Positions 44,467 through 55,022 of a DNA stretch of 56,019 nucleotides are shown here, in pieces. Under the pieces are notes generated by a model. It was given only the letters and a program-made list of their open reading frames with translations. It had not been told where the DNA came from and did no database searches. The translations under genes and the position numbers were made by a program. The DNA is from Basidiobolus meristosporus CBS 931.73 (lineage: Eukaryota > Fungi > Basidiobolomycota). The DNA lies in assembly GCA_002104905.1 (NCBI GenBank), contig MCFE01000583.1:1-56019 (forward strand), in the 5' to 3' direction. Numbering within the stretch: position 1 is the stretch's first letter; every line of letters begins with the position of its first letter.

Positions 44467-45828
44467 CTAATGAGCTGTACAATGGTTGACCACCTCGGCG
44501 GTGGACCAGCTTCGGATACTGATGTAGGTGACGAATACCATGACGGCGAAGCCAAAGACGATCATCAACCCATTGCAGATCCTGTACACACGCTTGGTCG
44601 CCACCGCCTTGTAGTGGAACATGGCTGGGTAGATGAAGAGCAAGGGGATACACCCAAAGCCGCCGATCAAGGCGACGAAGTTGTCCAGGTTCGAGGCGCC
44701 GCCCCAGGCAATCATGGCCAGCGCCAGGCAGAGGAGGATACGGAAGAGGTTCTTCTGCCACTTCACCATGGTCGAGGCTCTGCCTGATCTCTTACGGAAC
44801 AGGCCCTGCTCAAGGATATCGATGGCCGGGAACAGCATCAGCGGAAGGGTCAGGATGATGGCGAATACGTACAGGAATTGTACGGTGATGGTCATCGAGT
44901 GACCCACTGGCATGTTCATCAGAATGATCGTCTCGGTCACGTTGCCAAAGGCGGCGTAGGAGATGGCACCCACCGCGACGAACACCACCGTGGCACACAC
45001 GATGACACATGCCAGGACGGCGGGGAACCGTCTGGGCTCCTTCATGGAGTTGACAACGGGCAGCACCAAGCCGATTCCCTCGTAGCTAAACAAAGCGGTC
45101 CCGATGAACAGCGGGTAATCCTTGCTGTTGAAGAGCTGGATGTCCCCGGTGCCCACGGTGGTCAGCTTGTCAATGTCCCTGTAGAGGATGTAGACGATGC
45201 CGATCAGGATGAAAACATCCGCCAGCAAAGCGGTGTAAGAGAACGCCTTGATCTTTCGGGCCAGGGAGAAGGGCATGTACACCACCAGCTGGAGCAGGAT
45301 GAAATAGATCACCGGGATGTCCACGCTACAGTTCGACAACGAGTGGGTGAGGTCGTATAGATTCTGGGCCACAAAGATGAAATAAGCACAGCAGAAGCCC
45401 ATCTAATGGATGGAGAGGTTAGGGTGGGGTGGGGGACGTGAGGAGACGGGTTGGCGGAAGAGATTTACCTGGGATATGGTGATCGAGGTCATGACGACGA
45501 TTTTCATTGGTTTACCGTAGAGCTTCCCTCCGATGTCCTCGAAGTTCCCGGGGACTTGAAGTCGCACCTTGACCAGAAGCAGCATGGCCACCGCCGTGAT
45601 GGTTGCCACCACCGAGAGCACGATCATCGAGAAGATCAAGCCACCGTTGGAAAAGGCCTTGGGCAGGAAGAGGATCCCGGTACCAACGAAGGCCTTGATC
45701 AACAGCAGGAACGCCTTCTTCGCAGAAGTGGTTCCTTCGATGTCTTCGAAGACCTCGACGCCCACCCCCTGTCCTTCGCCCTTCATCGTGGGCTTGAAAC
45801 CGTCCTTCTCGCTGAAAGCATCCGCCAT
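44467..45828 (-). CDS. Amino-acid/auxin permease (Aa_trans, AVT3/AVT4-like) transporter, 2 exons (45828-45469, 45402-44467), 431 aa
   Basis: Motifs KAFLLLIKAFVGTGILFLPKAF, GFCCAYFIFVAQNL, FIGTALFSYEGIGLVLP and LIGGFGCIPLLFIYPAMFH. 66-nt phase-0 GT-AG intron with CTAAC. Confidence 0.93.
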
Positions 45829-46605
45829 GGCAGAATGAGTGATATGAGGTGGTCGCATGCGGTGGAGCGGGATTTATAGCGGTGGCCGAGCAGCACCGAA
45901 TCAACCGCATGTTTCACGCTGCGTACAAAAAAGTGAATTAACTTTTAAAGGCTAGGTTACACCCACCCGCTCTGCCTGACTCGGGTAATTACCCCACTGC
46001 CATATCCACGATCGTGTCTCACCCTGGCTAAGGTGGGTAGAGTCTTCTTGGGAACCAGTCAATCGGGGGCGAGTGTGCGCGGTGGGTGCGCGGTGGGTGC
46101 GAACAACAGCTCCACTGGGTAATTCACTCGACCACTTTGCTGGCTGTGGGGTGGATCTGAAATGCGAGGTTTGACGGCTAAATTTAGACAAGCGTGAGAA
46201 ATTCCCTCAAACAGGAAAAGATCCGGAATATGCCACTCCGAATTCTACGGCTCCGGGGTTGTGGATGGAGACATCCTCATATACACCGTGGTGGAATACA
46301 GAATGGAATCGGCCCACATGATCCATACGAAACAGCCAAGATGTGTTGAAGTGTGGTGAAGTCATTTTATAGGAATGCTCAGCAAAAAAAACATGCTTAG
46401 GTATGAATCAATATACAAATAATACAGGGTAATAAGTGAGGGGAGGGGAGGGGAGGGGTAACACTTCCTAGATAGATATGGTCTTTAGCATGAAATACCA
46501 AGGTTGCGGGCGGACAAGAAACGTTTGGATACGGGAGCGCCGTTCTCTGGATGGATGCGAACGCCACGCCAACTAGGTTTTCCCTGTCGGAGCTGGGGAC
46601 CAGCA

Positions 46606-47029
46606 TCAGACTTCCTCCATGTCGGCGTCCCCAGGATAACGGGCTCGCCTTTCGCTCAAGTTATTCTCAGAGGTCTAGAGTATGCGGGAAACCCTGCTCA
46701 GTCGGGGGTCAAGCTGCATGGTTCGACCATACCCCACTTACCTCCAGTCTGTGTCGGATGCGGCTACGAAGCACAGCTTGAGAGATCAGTAGTTGTTGAT
46801 GGAAGTGCCGATTTTCTATAGCTTGCTGGAAGCGGCGAAGCATGCGTTCGGTCGGCTCTTCGTAATGCAAGTTCGACTCGGATTCCGAGAAGTGCTCCAT
46901 GAAATGGGTGGTCAGATCAAGCTCTTGCAAGTCGAGGGGAGGTGACTCGACACGACGCTTCTCCTTCTCCTTGCTCTCTCTTTCTAGGCGCTCAAGCTCG
47001 GCGATTCTTTTTTGGTAGGAATTTCCCAT
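46606..47029 (-). CDS. Small hypothetical protein, 2 exons (47029-46742, 46674-46606), 118 aa
   Basis: ORF 46709-47029 has a strong GTAAGT donor after codon 96. A 67-nt intron to a TAG acceptor gives an in-frame tail TSENNLSERRARYPGDADMEEV*. No recognisable domain. Confidence 0.55.
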
Positions 47030-47857
47030 GAGTCAAGGGTTATAAGGTGTGGAGCAAAGTGGGGTGGCAGTTGATGTGGAGACGAACCATCGGTCTGAAG
47101 GGATTTCTAACCGCCTCACACCATCCGATCTGAAACAGAGAAGGGCACAATGGATATTTTTCGAGATTCAGGCATATTGATCGCTTCAATCGCCTCAATT
47201 ATGCAAATCAATCTATCCGACAATCCTTTGGTGAGGATCGATTGTTTGGATCTGTTGGCGGAGAGACGAAGTTAACGATGGGAATGTGGATGGCAGTGGC
47301 TGAACCATGATGGCGAGAAGGCGTCCAATCGATCCACCAGTATTCGATACGCATCTTAGTGGGCGATATAAAGTACATTGACCAAGCTTTCAGCGCGTCC
47401 ATTAATAAATGAGGTTTCATGTAGAGATGACCACCGAAATTATCTATTTTTGGACAATACAGGCTCGTCTATGAACAGATGCTGACTACAGTTTGGTTAG
47501 CGTCATGATGGATAAGGACATCTGAACAGCAGATCTGGAACCGCGATGCACAATATACGAATGGGCCAGACATCCTAGAGAAAGGTAACACCCACCAATA
47601 AAGCACCCCTCACCCCTCGGTTTCAATAGGGCTCGAATTCTGGACACAATCTAATTTCACCTGTGACCAGCGATGCGAGACTCCCGTGTCAAAAGCAGAA
47701 ACAACTGTAGAGTGAGGGTGGATCAGTGCAGTGGTTGTATTATAGCTTATTACGGGTTGGAAATAATTTGGCCAGCTATCTATGGAGTATTACTGCTGGG
47801 TTGAGGTGGAGATGGAAGTTGTGGTGGGGTGGGGTGGGGAAGCAGCCAGACTTCCAG

Positions 47858-50309
47858 CTATATCATGATTTGAACTATGGAAAGTGCTTGGACATATGGG
47901 ACAAGCATGATGCTGGACACAAAATAGAACAGTATTCCGAAGGCAATGGAGATCGGGAGCGCCGGTAGTGCCTTCCTCGCGATGGCCAGCAAAAAGATGG
48001 TGGCGTTCAATCCCTTGAAATGCCCATGATCGGAGGTTAGTTATCACTCGGACCACTTTAAACAAGGTACTAACCGTCATGACGGCCACCAAGCACGAAA
48101 TGGTGGTTATCCAATCGGACATTGCTGCAGAAGAATGCAATACGATTTAGACATCGTCCTTGTCAATAAATTCCTTGAACCTACGCACATGCTCTGGCTA
48201 TCAGCACGCTGTAGAACACGAAGTCCCCTAGGCCAAGCTTCAACCCGCTTCGCTCATCTGCATATGGTCCCGTTAAGGGTTAGCTTTGCTTTCGAAAGGA
48301 AGTGCGTATGGGAGAACACTTCACCTCCATCTTCCCCGTTTTCAGGCTCCGGGGGTTCTTGCCGATTCCCAGTGGGGGTAGTTGCTGCACCAGAGACGGA
48401 GAGTAGGTTGCTTTCAGAATCGCTCCGAGGTTGCATAGGAACCTCTTCTTCCCGAGGCATCAATGAGGATTGCCTGACGAGGATAGTGCTGGTGGAGCTG
48501 GTGGAGGCGCTGCTGATCTCTCGCCTATCGGGATGATAGTCGGTGCTTTCCAAGAACGGGTTCTCTAGCTTTGCGGCCGAGGCTTGATCAAACGGACGGT
48601 GGGCGGACGACGCAGCAGAAAGGGAATTGGGATGCAAATTCCGAAGGTTGGGGGAGGCTGAGGATTGTGAATACTCCAACTCGGATGGCCCGCCGCCAGA
48701 CTCGTCGCTACCGGTGCGCACCGGTTCGTATCCAGATAGATTTGTTGCCATCAGCCAAACGATGCTTCCCACTAAGAATGGGTTAGCCTGATGATCAGAG
48801 GCGGGCGACTTTGGAGATGCGGAGTGTCACTTGCCTGAATAGAGTAAAGCCGGAACATCTCTCTGCTGCTCTCTCGATGACTCGACAAGCATGCGCAGGG
48901 GGCCGTATGGACAAAGTACGGCAATAAGGTCTATTGAATTCGTCACAGCGCATACGTCAAGATGCAATTAAAAGAAAGACATACCCCATATAGCCAGAAG
49001 CCCAAGTAGCATCCAGGTTGTCCACTCTTGAAGCCCAGTCAGAGAGAAAGCCTATCGGGAGAATCGTCAGCAGCCAAAAGCGCCACGGGCAGTCACCCAC
49101 ACACTTACCATTAGCGAGGACATGATGGTCAGGTAGATCTGCTGAAGCAGCAACGGCCCTTTCCAGAATATCACCACCAGCCCGACGGCGGCAAAGTTGT
49201 AGAGACAAAACACAAGGGTGATGTAATCCAAGCCGAAATTGAACACCTGCAAGAGATTCCTACAATGGCCAAATCAACATCAGTTGGAACGATATGCCTC
49301 GTCTCAGTAGGTCCTACAATGCGAGCAAGTATCCCATGAATCCCAGTAGCGTGGTTACAACCAGAATGAAAAATCCGATCAATATCTACAGTGGGAAGGC
49401 TCATCAGACGGAGACAAACAGTCACAAAGCCACCCCGCATTTACCTTGATATATCCAAACTTGAATAGACACACAATGATGAACGTGGATACTACCACCT
49501 GGCCAATGATGATCAAGGCGTTCAACAGAGAGCCCACGAATCGATCGGAGCTGGAGCCGGTTCCGGATTCGTTGTATACTGCATAGCCAGATGGGGCCGG
49601 TCTGCGACAAGAAAGCCGTTAAACCTAGTGTGTCTAGCAGCGCTTAGGGTATACTGACCGGTAGTCACTCCCCGACATCGAAATCTTGACCCACACTATG
49701 GAGAGTATGATGCAGCAGAGCACAGGTTTAATGATCTGGTAAATTTGCGCCGTGTAGAACTGAAGTTCGCTTTTTTGCTCTTCCGGCGATTCCTCGACAG
49801 GCGGGCTCTGGTTGAAAGGAACTTGGCTATGCCGACTGTCGCCGTAAGTCATCTACGTCGAAGGGAATTGTAAGCAAGAGAATAGCAACGCGAGCGCTGA
49901 GCTGGCCTACCTGGCTAATATCTGAAGCATCTGCTTGGTGTGAAATAAAGGCAGCGATGAGTATAGTTTCTCGAGTGCAGAGGAATGGGTAAAGCGAATT
50001 CTACCGCTGTCTCGATTTGTCTCAGCTATCCTCCTGCAAGTCTGGATGTGCTGTGGCCAGTCTTCTTTTTGGCACCCTTCCGAACAGTACTGAACAGAAG
50101 AGCCGCATGCGCTGCACATGAATAAGGCGGGCTTGGAACAAACATGGCACCTTGAGAACTCTTGAATAGTAAGAAGTAAAATGTTCAGGTTAGCTCATAT
50201 TATCTGGGTGGAGAATGTGGCAGTTGAATGAATAAACATCGCCCCAACCATTATCACTATCGGTACTGCTAGACGCAGTACCAGCCTGCACTCCACTTGC
50301 GGAATTCAT
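47858..50309 (-). CDS. PSEN: Presenilin (gamma-secretase catalytic subunit, peptidase A22A) with predicted N-terminal MYND zinc finger, 13 exons, 564 aa
   Basis: Exons 50309-50249, 50160-50005, 49933-49911, 49852-49659, 49601-49445, 49385-49318, 49259-49109, 49051-48985, 48930-48835, 48771-48325, 48257-48189, 48124-48075, 48013-47858 splice in frame (1695 nt). Catalytic [14 protein letters not shown] and [13 protein letters not shown] motifs plus KALPALP. The presenilin part is secure; the joining of exons 1-3 is inferred. Confidence 0.9.
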
Positions 50310-50765
50310 AGAAAAGCTCGGATGGATGCAAGCCTCGAGTAGGGACGGAAACAAACGAAGAGCCTAGCGCAAGGATAAACACTATTCTTGGGCTGGGACG
50401 GTGTGAGTTAAGGTTAATGGAGATTGTTTGCCCAAACAGGAAGCCATGAATTTTCAATTAGCCAAATCCCATTCCCATCCCATTCCATTCCCATCCCAAA
50501 TCGATCACGTACCCTGGAAGCCAATAAGTAGGAAATTGCATGGCAGATAAGAACTCTCAAATCTGGTAGGACTTCCTTTGTGCAAACAAGTTGGAATGGT
50601 TGCCATTCCTGACCATCCTTCAATGGCACAGCCCTGCATTGGTGCATATGTTTATTACTGTACATTCCATTTAATAAATCGCAACATGATTTAGTCATTA
50701 AGTTATCTGAGGATGCACCAAGCCCTAGTCTCTCTAGTGGTAGATGCCCCTCGGATGCTGGCGAA

Positions 50766-51215
50766 TTATTTCTCCTTCCACTGGTGTTGGCACTCATGGT
50801 TACAGCACTTGTAGAACGTGGACATGGGTTCATCGGCCGAACGGATTTGGATCTGCAAGAAGTACGCGCGAGGATGTTCACACTTTGGACAAGAAGCTAC
50901 ACGAGGGGATTTAGCAAAGCAACCAATGGTAACAGGCAACTAGGACAAGACATACTTTCGATGGAATCCACATTGGCCCAGGCTTTTTCTCCACCGAGGA
51001 CATCATCGACCTCCTTACGCTTCAACACGTTCCTGGTGGCATGCTGGAAGAGGAAAAGATCAGTATCTCGAGCCGATGTCGCCGGAATGCTGGACAAAAC
51101 CACCCACCGTCCTGGTCACGGGAAACATGTAGGGACATGTTTGGCAGTAAAAGTGGTTCGAACCGGTGTCGTTGGAGATGAGCAGAAGGTTCGAACACGA
51201 CGGACAGAATAACAT
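50766..51215 (-). CDS. RPC11: RNA polymerase III subunit C11 (POLR3K/RPC10), 3 exons (51215-51108, 51043-50956, 50896-50766), 108 aa
   Basis: Spliced translation MLFCPSCSNLLL...FYCQTCPY...KRKEVDDVLGGEKAWANVD...CPKCEHPRAYFLQIQIRSADEPMSTFYKC has both zinc ribbons and the TFIIS-like QIRSADEPM motif. Confidence 0.96.
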
Positions 51216-51438
51216 GTTGCTCTAGGGAGTCCTGGGGAGAGTCTACGTACAGCGTGGTCTTGTAACCCAAGGGAAGGGTTTTTTTCTTTTTTTTCGACTA
51301 TGTTAATCAAATTATGGGCGCCGTTGCCCTGCTCTTAAACAAATTGTTTATCTTGGTGTATTGGCAGCAGGGTTAAATATTTGCCTTGCATAAGTGTGTG
51401 CCGGCCTCCTTTTTTGTTTCGACAAATCAACAAACAAC
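51216..51438. promoter_or_regulatory. Probable bidirectional promoter between RPC11 and RPL1
   Basis: Only 223 bp separate two divergent start codons, and the interval has poly(T) tracts. No specific factor-binding sites assigned. Confidence 0.55.
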
Positions 51439-52159
51439 ATGAGGTACGCAGATATCGATTAGGTGCGCGTTCATCCATCAATCATCATTAACATGCGCCC
51501 GATACTACAGTAGCAAAGTCTCCGTCGCTGCCGTGAGAGAGAGCGTCCGCATTGTCTTGGCTGAATCCCAAGAGAAGACCCGTAAGTTCACCGAAACCGT
51601 CGAGCTCCAGATCGGTCTCAAGAACTACGATCCCCAACGTGACAAACGTTTCTCTGGTACCATCAAGCTTCCCAATGTCCCCCGCCCCAAGATGTCGGTC
51701 TGTGTTCTTGGTGATGCTCATCACTGCGATCAAGCCAAGGAGCAAGGTTTGGAATCTATGTCCGTCGAGGATTTGAAGAAGTTGAACAAGAACAAGAAGC
51801 TTATCAAGAAGCTCGCCAAGAAGTTCGATGCTTTCCTTGCTTCTGAAGCTTTGATTAAGCAAATCCCTCGTCTTCTGGGCCCTGGTCTCCACAAGGCCGG
51901 TAAATTCCCCACCCCCGTTTCCCACAACGACAATTTGTCCGACAAGGCCAACGAACTTCGCTCCACCATCAAGTTCCAGCTTAAGAAGGTTCTTTGCCTC
52001 GGTGTCGCGGTCGGCCATGTCCAAATGACTGAGGACCAACTTCTCGGTAACATCATGTTGTCAGTCAACTTCTTGGTTTCCCTCCTGAAGAAGAACTGGC
52101 AAAACGTCAAGTCTCTTTACATCAAGAGCTCCATGGGCAAACCTCAACGTCTTTATTAA
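51439..52159 (+). CDS. RPL1: 60S ribosomal protein uL1 (L1/L10a), 2 exons (51439-51443, 51514-52159), 216 aa
   Basis: [26 protein letters not shown]...[11 protein letters not shown]. Micro-exon ATGAG plus intron gtacgc...cagtag restores the MSKVS N-terminus. Confidence 0.97.
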
Positions 52160-52456
52160 TCACCACGGCCCTCTCAGTTACGGGTTTTAGACTTGAATCC
52201 TAAAATTCTGCGGCATACCAAAGCGTAATATATGATCTATGTACATATACATATAGCTCTTGGGAGATTGAAACTAGACTTTGCTTAATAAATTGCTCAT
52301 AAACAAATGCTGGAAAGGCGAAGGAATATCGTATTTATTCCGTATGTAGGTATTGTATACAGTAGGGAATACGGGGTGAAATGCTAGAGGTGTGAATGTG
52401 ACAGTGTTGATGTTACCTGAGTAAGATTGATGGCGTTAATCTAGAATGATCCATGC

Positions 52457-54179
52457 TTAATCTCTGTAGGTAGACATGAACTTCTTGTGGAAGTTCTCAA
52501 GAAGGTTGATGAACTCATCGAAGGTGTGCTCAGGTGGAAGGAAGGTGGCACGGAAATGCCAGGTGCCTTCTTGCTGGCCAAAGCCGGATCCAGGGACGAC
52601 GCAAACACCGGTCTCCTTCAACATCTCCAAGCTGTAGAAGGCATCGGGCTGTTTACCAGCAGCTTTGGCGGCCTCGATGGCCTTGGCGGGGAGACGGATT
52701 TGAGGGAAGAGGTACATAGCTCCTTCAGCTTTGTTGCAGGTAACGCCCTCCAAGCCATTGAAGGCAGAGGCCAATTTGGTGCTTCTTCTGATCAAGGAGG
52801 TGTAAATGTCGTCCATTTCATTCTTGTATAGTTCGTATGAAGGCTCCCCAGGTTGAGGAGGGTTGACCATTAGCTCCATCATAACCTGGCCTTGAACATT
52901 GGGGCAAAGAGAGATAGAAGAGATCTTGTACATCTGGTCGATAACCTTGGGGTCAATTCCGGTGCACTCGACATATCCACCACGTCTACCACATTCTCCG
53001 ATCATACCCTTGGAAATGGAGTGGAACGAGAAGAGCTCAACATTCTCGTAGCTTGATCCCATGCTCTTGAGAACCTTCTTAAATGAGTGGAAAGGTCTTT
53101 CTTCGGGGACGTAGATATTAGTTTGGTAGACCTCATCGGCGCAGAGAACAAGTCTTTCACGTTGGCAGAAGTCTATGACATCGCGCATATTCTCCTCAGT
53201 TAAGCATTGTCCGGTGGGGTTTCCAGGGTTGATGATGACAAGTGCACGAACGTCGGTACCATTACGTCTGGCCTCATCCACGGACTTCTTCAAGTCAGCA
53301 ATGTTCATTCCCCAGGCATTCTCCTCATCCAAGTAGTAAGGAACTGGCTGTCCATTGAACAAGGCAAGGGAGGCAGTGTAGAGAGGGTATTGGGGAATTG
53401 GGATCAAAACTCCAACCTCTGGCTTGTCAATCATGCATTGCAAAACCAATTGAACTGCTGGAGAAGCACCGGCAGTAAGGAAGATGGAATCGGGATCGGA
53501 GGAGAAACCATCACGCCTCTCGATGAACTTGGCAACCTGCTCACGGATGTATGGGATTCCCATGGAGTGGCTGTAGGAACCGACACTGCCACCAGCACTG
53601 GCAACCAATTTCTTGGCACGCTCAATAGTGTCCTTGGGGTAAAGAGCCTCAACCTTCTCTCTGTTTTCGTCAGATAGAAGTTCGGGGTTTTCTACCAGTG
53701 AGGCGACTTGGCGGAAGAAGGTAATGGGCTTTTGCTTCAATTGCTGAGGATTACCGATGTTAATGTTGGTAATCTCCTTGAATGGCAATTGAGCACCTTG
53801 GGCCAGTTTCTGGTGGAGAAGAACATAAGTAGCCAACCTAGGTATCAGTCACCAAGGATAGAGAACTTACATTCTTAAGGGTGTCGGCCAAAATGGCAAT
53901 TTCACCACGAACGGCATATTCTACACTTTTCACTCTGGGGTTAAGGTTCTCGAGGGTAAGAACTTTGCTGCTGGTGGAGGACTCGGCGACTAGAATCGTT
54001 ACAATCATGTTAATAAATGGATAGGATTAAAATTTTCATCGATCACATCTACCTTCGGGAACAGCAGATAGGGCTCTGAATCCTTGGTAACGAAGGCTAG
54101 AGGGGGTCAAAGCCAATTTACGGGCTTGGGAGCGGAAGGTGCTGAGTGAGTTAATACGGGTGAAGAGACGAACAGTCAT
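52457..54179 (-). CDS. ALT1: Alanine aminotransferase (class I PLP enzyme) with probable mitochondrial presequence, 3 exons (54179-54053, 53989-53871, 53809-52457), 532 aa
   Basis: Motifs VEYAVRGEI, NIGNPQQL, GSYSHSMG, IINPGNPTGQ, ADEVYQTN, PLP lysine in SFHSISKG, GECGRRGGY. N-terminus MTVRLFTRINSLSTFRSQARK is rich in Arg/Ser/Leu and lacks acidic residues. Confidence 0.95.
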
Positions 54180-55022
54180 TTGATTGAGATTGTAACCCTA
54201 CGAAGGCGGACGGGTGAATGCTGAGGACGAACCGAATCACATTGCTTTTATACGGGACGGGGTGTTGGGAAAAGGTCATACGCTGCTCATATTTGACTCA
54301 GTTTGTAAAATAGCGCGTGCAGTTATTCCGATTGTGTAATGTTCGTAGTAAGTCCACGACGTAACAATCTTTAGGGCTCACGAGACCACCTTATTCCTGT
54401 TGGTTTTCGGGAAAGATAAAGCCAAGGCAATCTCATTTCGCACGCTTAGCCATCAGTAGATTGATCATAGAGAACAAGGTCGGAGGTGCTCAAACTTCGA
54501 TTAAAGGCTCTTGGTAAAGTCTACCAATAATTTCCGGTAGCTCTTAATGATGGTTACTATAATTGGGAATATCTTCATCGGGTGACTGATCATCTATTAT
54601 GGACCAGCTGAAGTAGGGAGGACACTAACAGGCTATACAACATTGGGCTCTGCTTAGCGCGATGAATCATAGATTATCTATGTGCGGTTGAGCCTGTATA
54701 CAATCAGAAAGTGCCATTGACGATTAAGATTTGTGTGCTACAAGTGGTTCTGTTTACTATCTGGATGTTGATAATATAACGCCTCCGTAGATATCACGGA
54801 ATGGCTTTGGATTGATGAAGGCGCCACCGAACATCTGTGGCGCCTGCTTTACTCTGAGCAAAGCTTAGTATCCCTTACTACAGATGCACGCCACTAGATA
54901 TGTTCCGGTACATCGAAGGATGATTATTTTATCGCAGATGATCTACCATTAGCTTCAAAGTAGGGTTGACACAAAGCTAATCTGATTCTTCGTCAGCACT
55001 TGATCAATTATTGAATTGAGCC

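Follow-up and report, generated by a model that had tools for sequence, protein, structure and literature searches.

Does a fungus make a presenilin, a membrane protease of the Alzheimer type, that carries a MYND zinc finger at its N-terminus and, if so, what would such a finger do on the catalytic subunit of a gamma-secretase? The question is raised by contig MCFE01000583.1 of Basidiobolus meristosporus CBS 931.73, a whole scaffold of 56,019 bp (the window). Its minus strand holds, at 50309-47858, a gene of 13 exons in which a zf-MYND domain is fused to a presenilin domain; a first-pass annotation made from the DNA letters had suggested such a fusion by splicing. Comparison with orthologs, rather than any statistic of the window, places the architecture beyond chance, and on these grounds we conclude that an N-terminal MYND finger is spliced in frame onto an intact presenilin. 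We consider it likely that this one gene specifies a MYND finger, a linker and a presenilin, and that its product would be the catalytic subunit of a gamma-secretase whose finger docks a partner bearing a PxLxP-type motif.

The spliced translation, with exon 3 placed at 49930-49911, matches the deposited protein ORX85883.1 (UniProt A0A1Y1XJK0) residue for residue over 563 amino acids. That record, from the same strain, is named 'Presenilin-domain-containing protein'. When a 50-residue piece of exon 7 was compared with 1.84 billion representative proteins, a 563-residue match was retrieved that is 100% identical over the piece. The introns of the gene are short and of fungal type, with lengths of 54-88 nucleotides (nt). 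Its features are as follows, with transmembrane helices numbered TM1 to TM9 and human presenilin-1 abbreviated PS1:

47858..50309, minus strand: whole coding sequence of the MYND-presenilin, 13 exons, 563 codons plus stop; equals ORX85883.1.
50249..50309, minus strand: exon 1 (61 nt), with the start ATG at 50309; encodes residues 1-20 plus one base and fits the deposited N-terminus.
50005..50160, minus strand: exon 2 (156 nt), which contains the MYND finger; its donor, G/GTA, is conserved in Basidiobolus ranarum.
50036..50149, minus strand: MYND zinc finger, C25-C62, of the C4-C2HC type; Pfam PF01753, E = 2.5e-10.
49911..49930, minus strand: exon 3, a micro-exon of 20 nt that restores the frame and is required to reproduce ORX85883.1.
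49907..49909, minus strand: TAG that closes the MYND open reading frame upon retention of intron 2; lies within the GTAG donor of intron 3.
47858..49852, minus strand: exons 4-13, presenilin proper, residues 80-563; an in-frame ATG (49852-49850) stands at the start.
48929..48985, minus strand: codon of the catalytic Asp292 (TM6, WD), split by intron 8 (48985 / 48930-48929); aligns with D257 of PS1.
48772..48834, minus strand: intron 9, of the GC-AG type, with a perfect donor, GCAAGT, and a branch-like CTAAC.
48223..48225, minus strand: codon of the catalytic Asp484 (TM7, GLGD); aligns with D385 of PS1 and is invariant in 58 sequences.
47954..47965, minus strand: PALP motif, P529-P532 (TM9); aligns with PALP of PS1 and is invariant in 58 sequences.

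How are the two domains connected? Read without splicing, the MYND open reading frame stops at the TAG at 49909-49907, just where the first-pass annotation had ended it, 55 nt ahead of the ATG at 49852; a fusion thus requires two introns and a micro-exon. The annotation had proposed exactly such an arrangement, and the in-frame join through two introns and a micro-exon is borne out by both ORX85883.1 and B. ranarum, but the proposed micro-exon length of 23 nt is not: the exon measures 20 nt and uses a CAG acceptor. The difference lies in a NAGNAG tandem acceptor before the micro-exon (49931-49936, minus strand), in which AAG is followed by CAG. Use of the CAG at 49933-49931 gives the 20-nt exon 3; use of the AAG gives 23 nt (49933-49911), in frame and with one extra alanine. 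The exon set of the first-pass annotation has an open frame of 1695 nt, or 564 codons. In B. ranarum, the only acceptor is a TAG that aligns with the CAG of B. meristosporus; no AG precedes it. Direct splicing from 50005 to 49852, skipping the micro-exon, was rejected as it shifts the frame. At the 5' end, the suggestion that a 61-nt exon supplies the start codon held up: the ATG and the GATAATG/GTT donor of exon 1 are conserved in B. ranarum, and the exon agrees with the deposited N-terminus. Within the presenilin part, no splice other than the GC-AG splice of intron 9 preserves the frame across the conserved PALLYS / VW.MA junction, and the deposited model uses the same splice.

Support for the fusion comes from other species. 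The B. ranarum ortholog (P0153) is 76% identical and shares all 13 exons, down to the 20-nt micro-exon at the corresponding place. When the DNA of the two species is aligned, the exons stand out as conserved islands, and the introns have diverged by substitutions as well as by insertions and deletions. Exon 4 of B. ranarum starts with ATA (Ile), not ATG, and there is no methionine between this point and TM1, so that its presenilin cannot be translated without the upstream exons. In Catenaria anguillulae (P0210), a single stop-free exon encodes residues 1-228, comprising the MYND finger (residues 32-69) and the first presenilin helices (TM1-3); because both lie in one exon, this fusion is independent of splice prediction. 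In the B. meristosporus protein itself, Pfam detects both domains on a single polypeptide, Presenilin with 401 bits and zf-MYND with 36 bits. The first-pass annotation had noted that a lack of spliced reads across exon 3, coupled with an absence of orthologs sharing the fusion, would speak against it; of the 120 best homologs listed by a word search with the entire protein, 82 carry both PF01753 and PF01080 among their precomputed domains.

The finger is complete, as the first-pass annotation had seen. PF01753, whose cut-off is 22.7 bits, reaches 40.7 bits with the exon piece and 36.4 bits with the full protein, and all eight zinc ligands are present (C25, C28, C36, C39, C46, C50, H58 and C62). 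In an alignment of 58 sequences, 52 of which bear the finger, each of these ligands is kept in 48-52 of the 52, and Tyr45, Ser47, Gln51 and Trp55 are invariant among the finger-bearing orthologs. In ETO, residues equivalent to Gln51 and Trp55, in the CQ...W..H stretch, take part in binding peptides. An AlphaFold2 model built on the 58-sequence alignment assigns MYND residues 21-70 a predicted local distance difference test (pLDDT) score of 91-95. Foldseek placed the N-terminal domain on the MYND structures of ETO, DEAF-1/BS69, ZMYND8 and ZMYND11 with root-mean-square deviations (rmsd) of 1.0-1.4 Å, the superposition on AML1-ETO and DEAF-1/BS69 giving 1.4 Å; DEAF-1 was also found by sequence (E = 5.9e-4). 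A structure search of the ESM Atlas with residues 1-140 returned generic MYND clusters only.

The presenilin is likewise intact, in keeping with the first-pass annotation: both catalytic aspartates, D292 and D484, and the PALP motif are present. With PF01080 (cut-off 34.3 bits) the score is 401.4 bits, the match running from residue 111 to 553 and over profile positions 2-408, and the separate pieces of exons 4-13 also score as Pfam Presenilin. A phmmer comparison with human PS1 gave E = 8.5e-74, with D257, D385 and PALP aligned. In the 58-sequence alignment D292 is at least 90% conserved. The TM6 catalytic motif in fungi is WD, not YD. The (W/Y)NF motif of TM4, which serves PEN-2 binding, has a Tyr (YNF) in Basidiobolus but a Trp (WNF) in most fungi; its Asn240 is invariant in the 58 sequences. 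The VW.MA stretch, which lies where PS1 has its cleavage region, is conserved. In the AlphaFold2 model the membrane core has a pLDDT of about 90, and both the linker (residues 75-93) and a long loop (residues 342-476) fall below 50. Foldseek superimposed the core on the PS1 chains of human gamma-secretase, with E values down to 2.5e-12 and template-modeling (TM) scores, by target, of 0.75-0.83. The match to SPPL2a was weak (E = 0.66, TM score 0.38), which points to a PS1 fold rather than to that of a signal peptide peptidase.

How old is the fusion? Most fungi outside Dikarya have the same build. Among the 120 best homologs, both domains occur together in Mucorales, Umbelopsis, Mortierellomycota, Glomeromycota, Calcarisporiella, Syncephalis, Blastocladiomycota, many chytrid orders and the aphelid Amoeboaphelidium protococcarum. 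At the level of phyla, these are Chytridiomycota, Blastocladiomycota, Zoopagomycota, Mucoromycota, Mortierellomycota and Glomeromycota, together with the aphelid. Additional chytrid, Syncephalis and metagenomic fusions were found among the representative proteins, and every named carrier among the best 120 and best 150 matches is a fungus or an aphelid. A word search limited to residues 18-70, which requires exact shared words and is uninformative beyond fungi, returned the two Basidiobolus proteins only. Its presence in six fungal phyla and an aphelid makes an origin on the fungal stem probable, followed by a loss in Dikarya along with presenilin itself. Both domains have been under strong constraint since the divergence of the fungal phyla.

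Some fungal presenilin entries have no finger. Several of these are truncated models that start inside the finger or at TM1. The idea that all MYND-less fungal presenilins are annotation errors was rejected on account of Gonapodya prolifera (P0248) and Amoeboaphelidium occidentale (P0211), whose presenilins have long N-termini without a finger and for which no MYND-like open reading frame was found within the gene or in the 1-1.5 kb upstream. The finger has thus been lost in some lineages. In Amoeboaphelidium the loss looks lineage-specific, as A. protococcarum, sister to A. occidentale, carries a finger. As a separate observation, three gene models place further domains (armadillo/HEAT repeats or PF06094) ahead of the MYND-presenilin, two from Batrachochytrium salamandrivorans (P0254 and P0259) and one from Rhizophagus irregularis (P0193); these three-part models are probably merged neighboring genes and not real proteins.

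The linker between the domains varies among lineages. A motif of the form AQ(I/V/L)(I/L)N is found in the linkers of Glomeromycota, Umbelopsis, Calcarisporiella, Syncephalis and Spizellomycetales (for example, at residues 145-149 of P0003 and 124-128 of P0018). It also occurs in two entries annotated without a finger (P0250 and P0238) and is missing from Basidiobolus and Mucorales. A different motif, P(R/Q)LTP, is conserved in the linkers of Mortierellomycota about 20 residues before TM1 (P0020, P0159, P0166, P0169, P0175, P0221 and P0252); no motif of this type was found in the Basidiobolus, Mucorales, Glomeromycota or chytrid proteins. P(R/Q)LTP follows the canonical PxLxP pattern of MYND ligands, and the finger of Mortierellomycota may bind this motif in its own linker.

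What could the finger do for the protease? The polypeptide is predicted to run from the MYND finger (residues 25-62) through a disordered linker of about 45 residues to a complete nine-helix presenilin, with two short introns and the 20-nt micro-exon putatively joining the MYND exon in frame to the presenilin exons. The N-terminus of presenilin is cytosolic in animals, an established topology, and because of this the finger would be expected in the cytosol, and endoproteolysis would leave it attached to the N-terminal fragment. The protein would have protease activity, would form a complex and would act as the catalytic subunit of a fungal gamma-secretase. The MYND fingers of ETO, BS69 and PHD2 dock short proline-rich motifs of other proteins. 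The Basidiobolus finger may likewise recruit to the protease, in trans, a cytosolic or membrane-anchored partner with a proline-rich, PxLxP-type motif. This partner could be the tail of a substrate, a regulator or a co-chaperone. Such an adaptor role would fit both the topology and the conserved surface residues of the MYND domain.

Several points weigh against this reading. The presenilins of G. prolifera and A. occidentale imply that the finger is dispensable in some lineages. A search for a PxLxP or PxLE ligand inside the Basidiobolus protein found none except one unconserved PFLE in the disordered loop. For B. meristosporus itself, the case for splicing is built on the deposited model and on comparison with other species. 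Finally, the in-frame ATG lies exactly at the start of exon 4, making a MYND-less isoform possible in B. meristosporus.

The simplest rival holds that there are two genes, or one bicistronic transcript: a MYND protein of about 110 amino acids ending at the TAG at 49907 and a presenilin starting from the ATG at 49852, the fusion being an artefact of prediction. The stop of the unspliced MYND frame at 49907 and the ATG at 49852 fit this arrangement, as do the weak donors of introns 1-3 (GTTGGG, GTAGAA and GTAGGC). We nevertheless regard it as highly improbable: the 55-nt gap leaves no space for a terminator and a promoter, B. ranarum begins its exon 4 with ATA and lacks a methionine before TM1, Catenaria has both domains in one exon, and the 82 fusions among the 120 best homologs were annotated by independent pipelines. 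In addition, a word search with the 83-residue MYND open reading frame found no related protein of 46-145 amino acids, which is weak evidence. A milder version of the same doubt accepts the conserved fusion but supposes that B. meristosporus also makes a presenilin without the finger, through retention of intron 2 or a start at Met80, and possibly a free MYND protein, with splicing regulating the presence of the finger. Micro-exons are often skipped or regulated, exon 3 has its NAGNAG acceptor, retention of intron 2 creates a stop just before the ATG, and that ATG stands exactly at the exon 4 boundary in both B. meristosporus copies of the gene. Against this, the exon 4 ATG is not conserved in B. 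ranarum, and skipping of the micro-exon shifts the frame; we consider production of both forms improbable.

A rival of another kind concerns function: the finger might act in cis, binding a motif of its own protein or complex for autoinhibition or gating, or in folding and assembly of the protease through an Hsp90 co-chaperone, rather than in substrate recruitment. The MYND domain of PHD2 binds PxLE co-chaperones, and MYND domains are attached to other enzymes as well, as seen in the prolyl hydroxylase, ubiquitin hydrolase and SET methyltransferase clusters. In Mortierellomycota, given the P(R/Q)LTP motif in their linker, a cis or gating role is still conceivable. Such a ligand is absent from Basidiobolus, Mucorales, Glomeromycota and chytrids, however, which argues that a cis ligand is not general, and the Basidiobolus linker is short, at about 45 residues. 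With no conserved PxLxP or PxLE in Basidiobolus, binding of a cis ligand was dismissed as the general mode of action. We judge a cis or assembly role in place of recruitment unlikely, though a serious alternative. Recruitment of a partner in trans can be taken one step further, in a form we offer only tentatively: the fusion could have been invented on the fungal stem about a billion years ago and could record a physical coupling of gamma-secretase to a PxLxP-bearing partner, in the manner of a Rosetta-stone fusion. If this were true, the ligand of the finger would identify a gamma-secretase substrate or regulator in organisms without Notch or APP, and it may point to an unrecognized MYND-protein partner of presenilin in animals.

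The genomic surroundings of the gene are shared with a second B. meristosporus scaffold. A second protein record, ORX92166.1, lies on a scaffold of 102,848 bp with the same gene order, and positions 45940-54391 of MCFE01000289.1 are 99.4% identical to 44858-53309 of the window over 8.45 kb. Given this identity, the second copy is, by sequence, a haplotig or a very recent duplicate. The block present on both scaffolds comprises an aminotransferase, ribosomal L1, an RPB9/TFIIS-type zinc ribbon, the MYND-presenilin and an amino-acid transporter. The genes for ribosomal protein L1/L10a and for the RPB9/TFIIS-type zinc-ribbon RNA-polymerase subunit (window 50766-52159) adjoin the presenilin gene in B. 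ranarum too, and local synteny is thus conserved between the two species. Another part of the window differs in character: positions 1-43000 are AT-rich (37-41% G+C, versus 47-55% at the gene-bearing end) and are full of pieces of copia-type and Ty3/gypsy-type long terminal repeat retrotransposons, with open reading frames for gag, protease, integrase and reverse transcriptase, many of them interrupted.

Is the architecture new? The first-pass annotation had left this point undecided, and the answer is that it is already catalogued in GenBank, UniProt, Pfam and the ESM Atlas: it is genuine, ancient and apparently unstudied, but not unseen. The protein, with both Pfam domains, has been public for years, and UniProt names the Lichtheimia and Phycomyces orthologs 'MYND-type domain-containing protein'. 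According to Merenyi et al. 2023 (PMC10406608), fungi outside Dikarya have kept the gamma-secretase complex and Dikarya have lost it, in agreement with the absence from Dikarya stated by the first-pass annotation; in their supplement, the orthogroups of nicastrin, Aph-1 and PEN-2 have a phyletic distribution resembling that of the presenilin orthogroup. A supplementary table of the same paper lists IPR002893 (zinc finger, MYND-type) for 17 of the 58 members of the presenilin orthogroup, without comment; Basidiobolus was not found in the part of the supplement covered. A full-text search, with incomplete coverage of the literature, returned no paper that by title or abstract deals with a MYND-presenilin fusion or with functional work on a fungal presenilin. 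The value of the present analysis thus lies in showing an apparently unstudied architecture to be genuine and ancient. The role of gamma-secretase outside animals is poorly understood, and in fungi the enzyme was long thought absent. A cytosolic interaction domain on its catalytic subunit, constrained across nearly all presenilin-bearing fungal phyla, would offer an experimental handle.

The closest structural counterparts of the protease part are human presenilin-1 and -2 (family A22A; PDB 5A63, 6IYC and 7Y5X), with which the Basidiobolus protein shares the catalytic aspartate pair, GLGD, PALP, the NF motif of TM4 and the nine-helix core, as well as a long disordered cytosolic loop between TM6 and TM7. 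It differs from the human protein in the TM6 motif, which is WD instead of YD. In contrast to animal presenilins, whose unstructured N-terminus carries no domain, its N-terminus is a folded MYND finger. The fungus is not known to have a Notch pathway.

The finger, in turn, resembles those of ETO/MTG8, DEAF-1, BS69/ZMYND11 and ZMYND8 (PDB 2OD1, 2JW6, 4A24 and 9WV4) in its C4-C2HC pattern and Y-C-S..C-Q...W..H core, and its superposition on the ETO, DEAF-1, BS69 and ZMYND8 fingers covers about 40 residues. Those fingers belong to soluble nuclear co-repressors and chromatin readers, whereas that of Basidiobolus is tethered to a polytopic membrane protease. Clusters of MYND-bearing enzymes (prolyl hydroxylase, ubiquitin hydrolase and SET methyltransferase) are structural neighbors of the N-terminal 140 residues, and the combination of a catalytic domain with a small MYND module recalls PHD2-type prolyl hydroxylases, USP19/UBP-type ubiquitin hydrolases and SMYD SET methyltransferases. 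In the enzymes of this kind that have been studied, the MYND module brings in a partner; unlike the Basidiobolus protein, none of them is an intramembrane protease. Relatives in full length include the MYND-presenilins of Mucor lusitanicus, Rhizophagus, Mortierella alpina, Allomyces, Batrachochytrium and Amoeboaphelidium protococcarum, which have the same domain order at 40-57% identity. Compared with other early-diverging fungi, Basidiobolus stands apart in having one of the shortest linkers, in lacking AQ(I/V)IN and in joining its two domains through a micro-exon.

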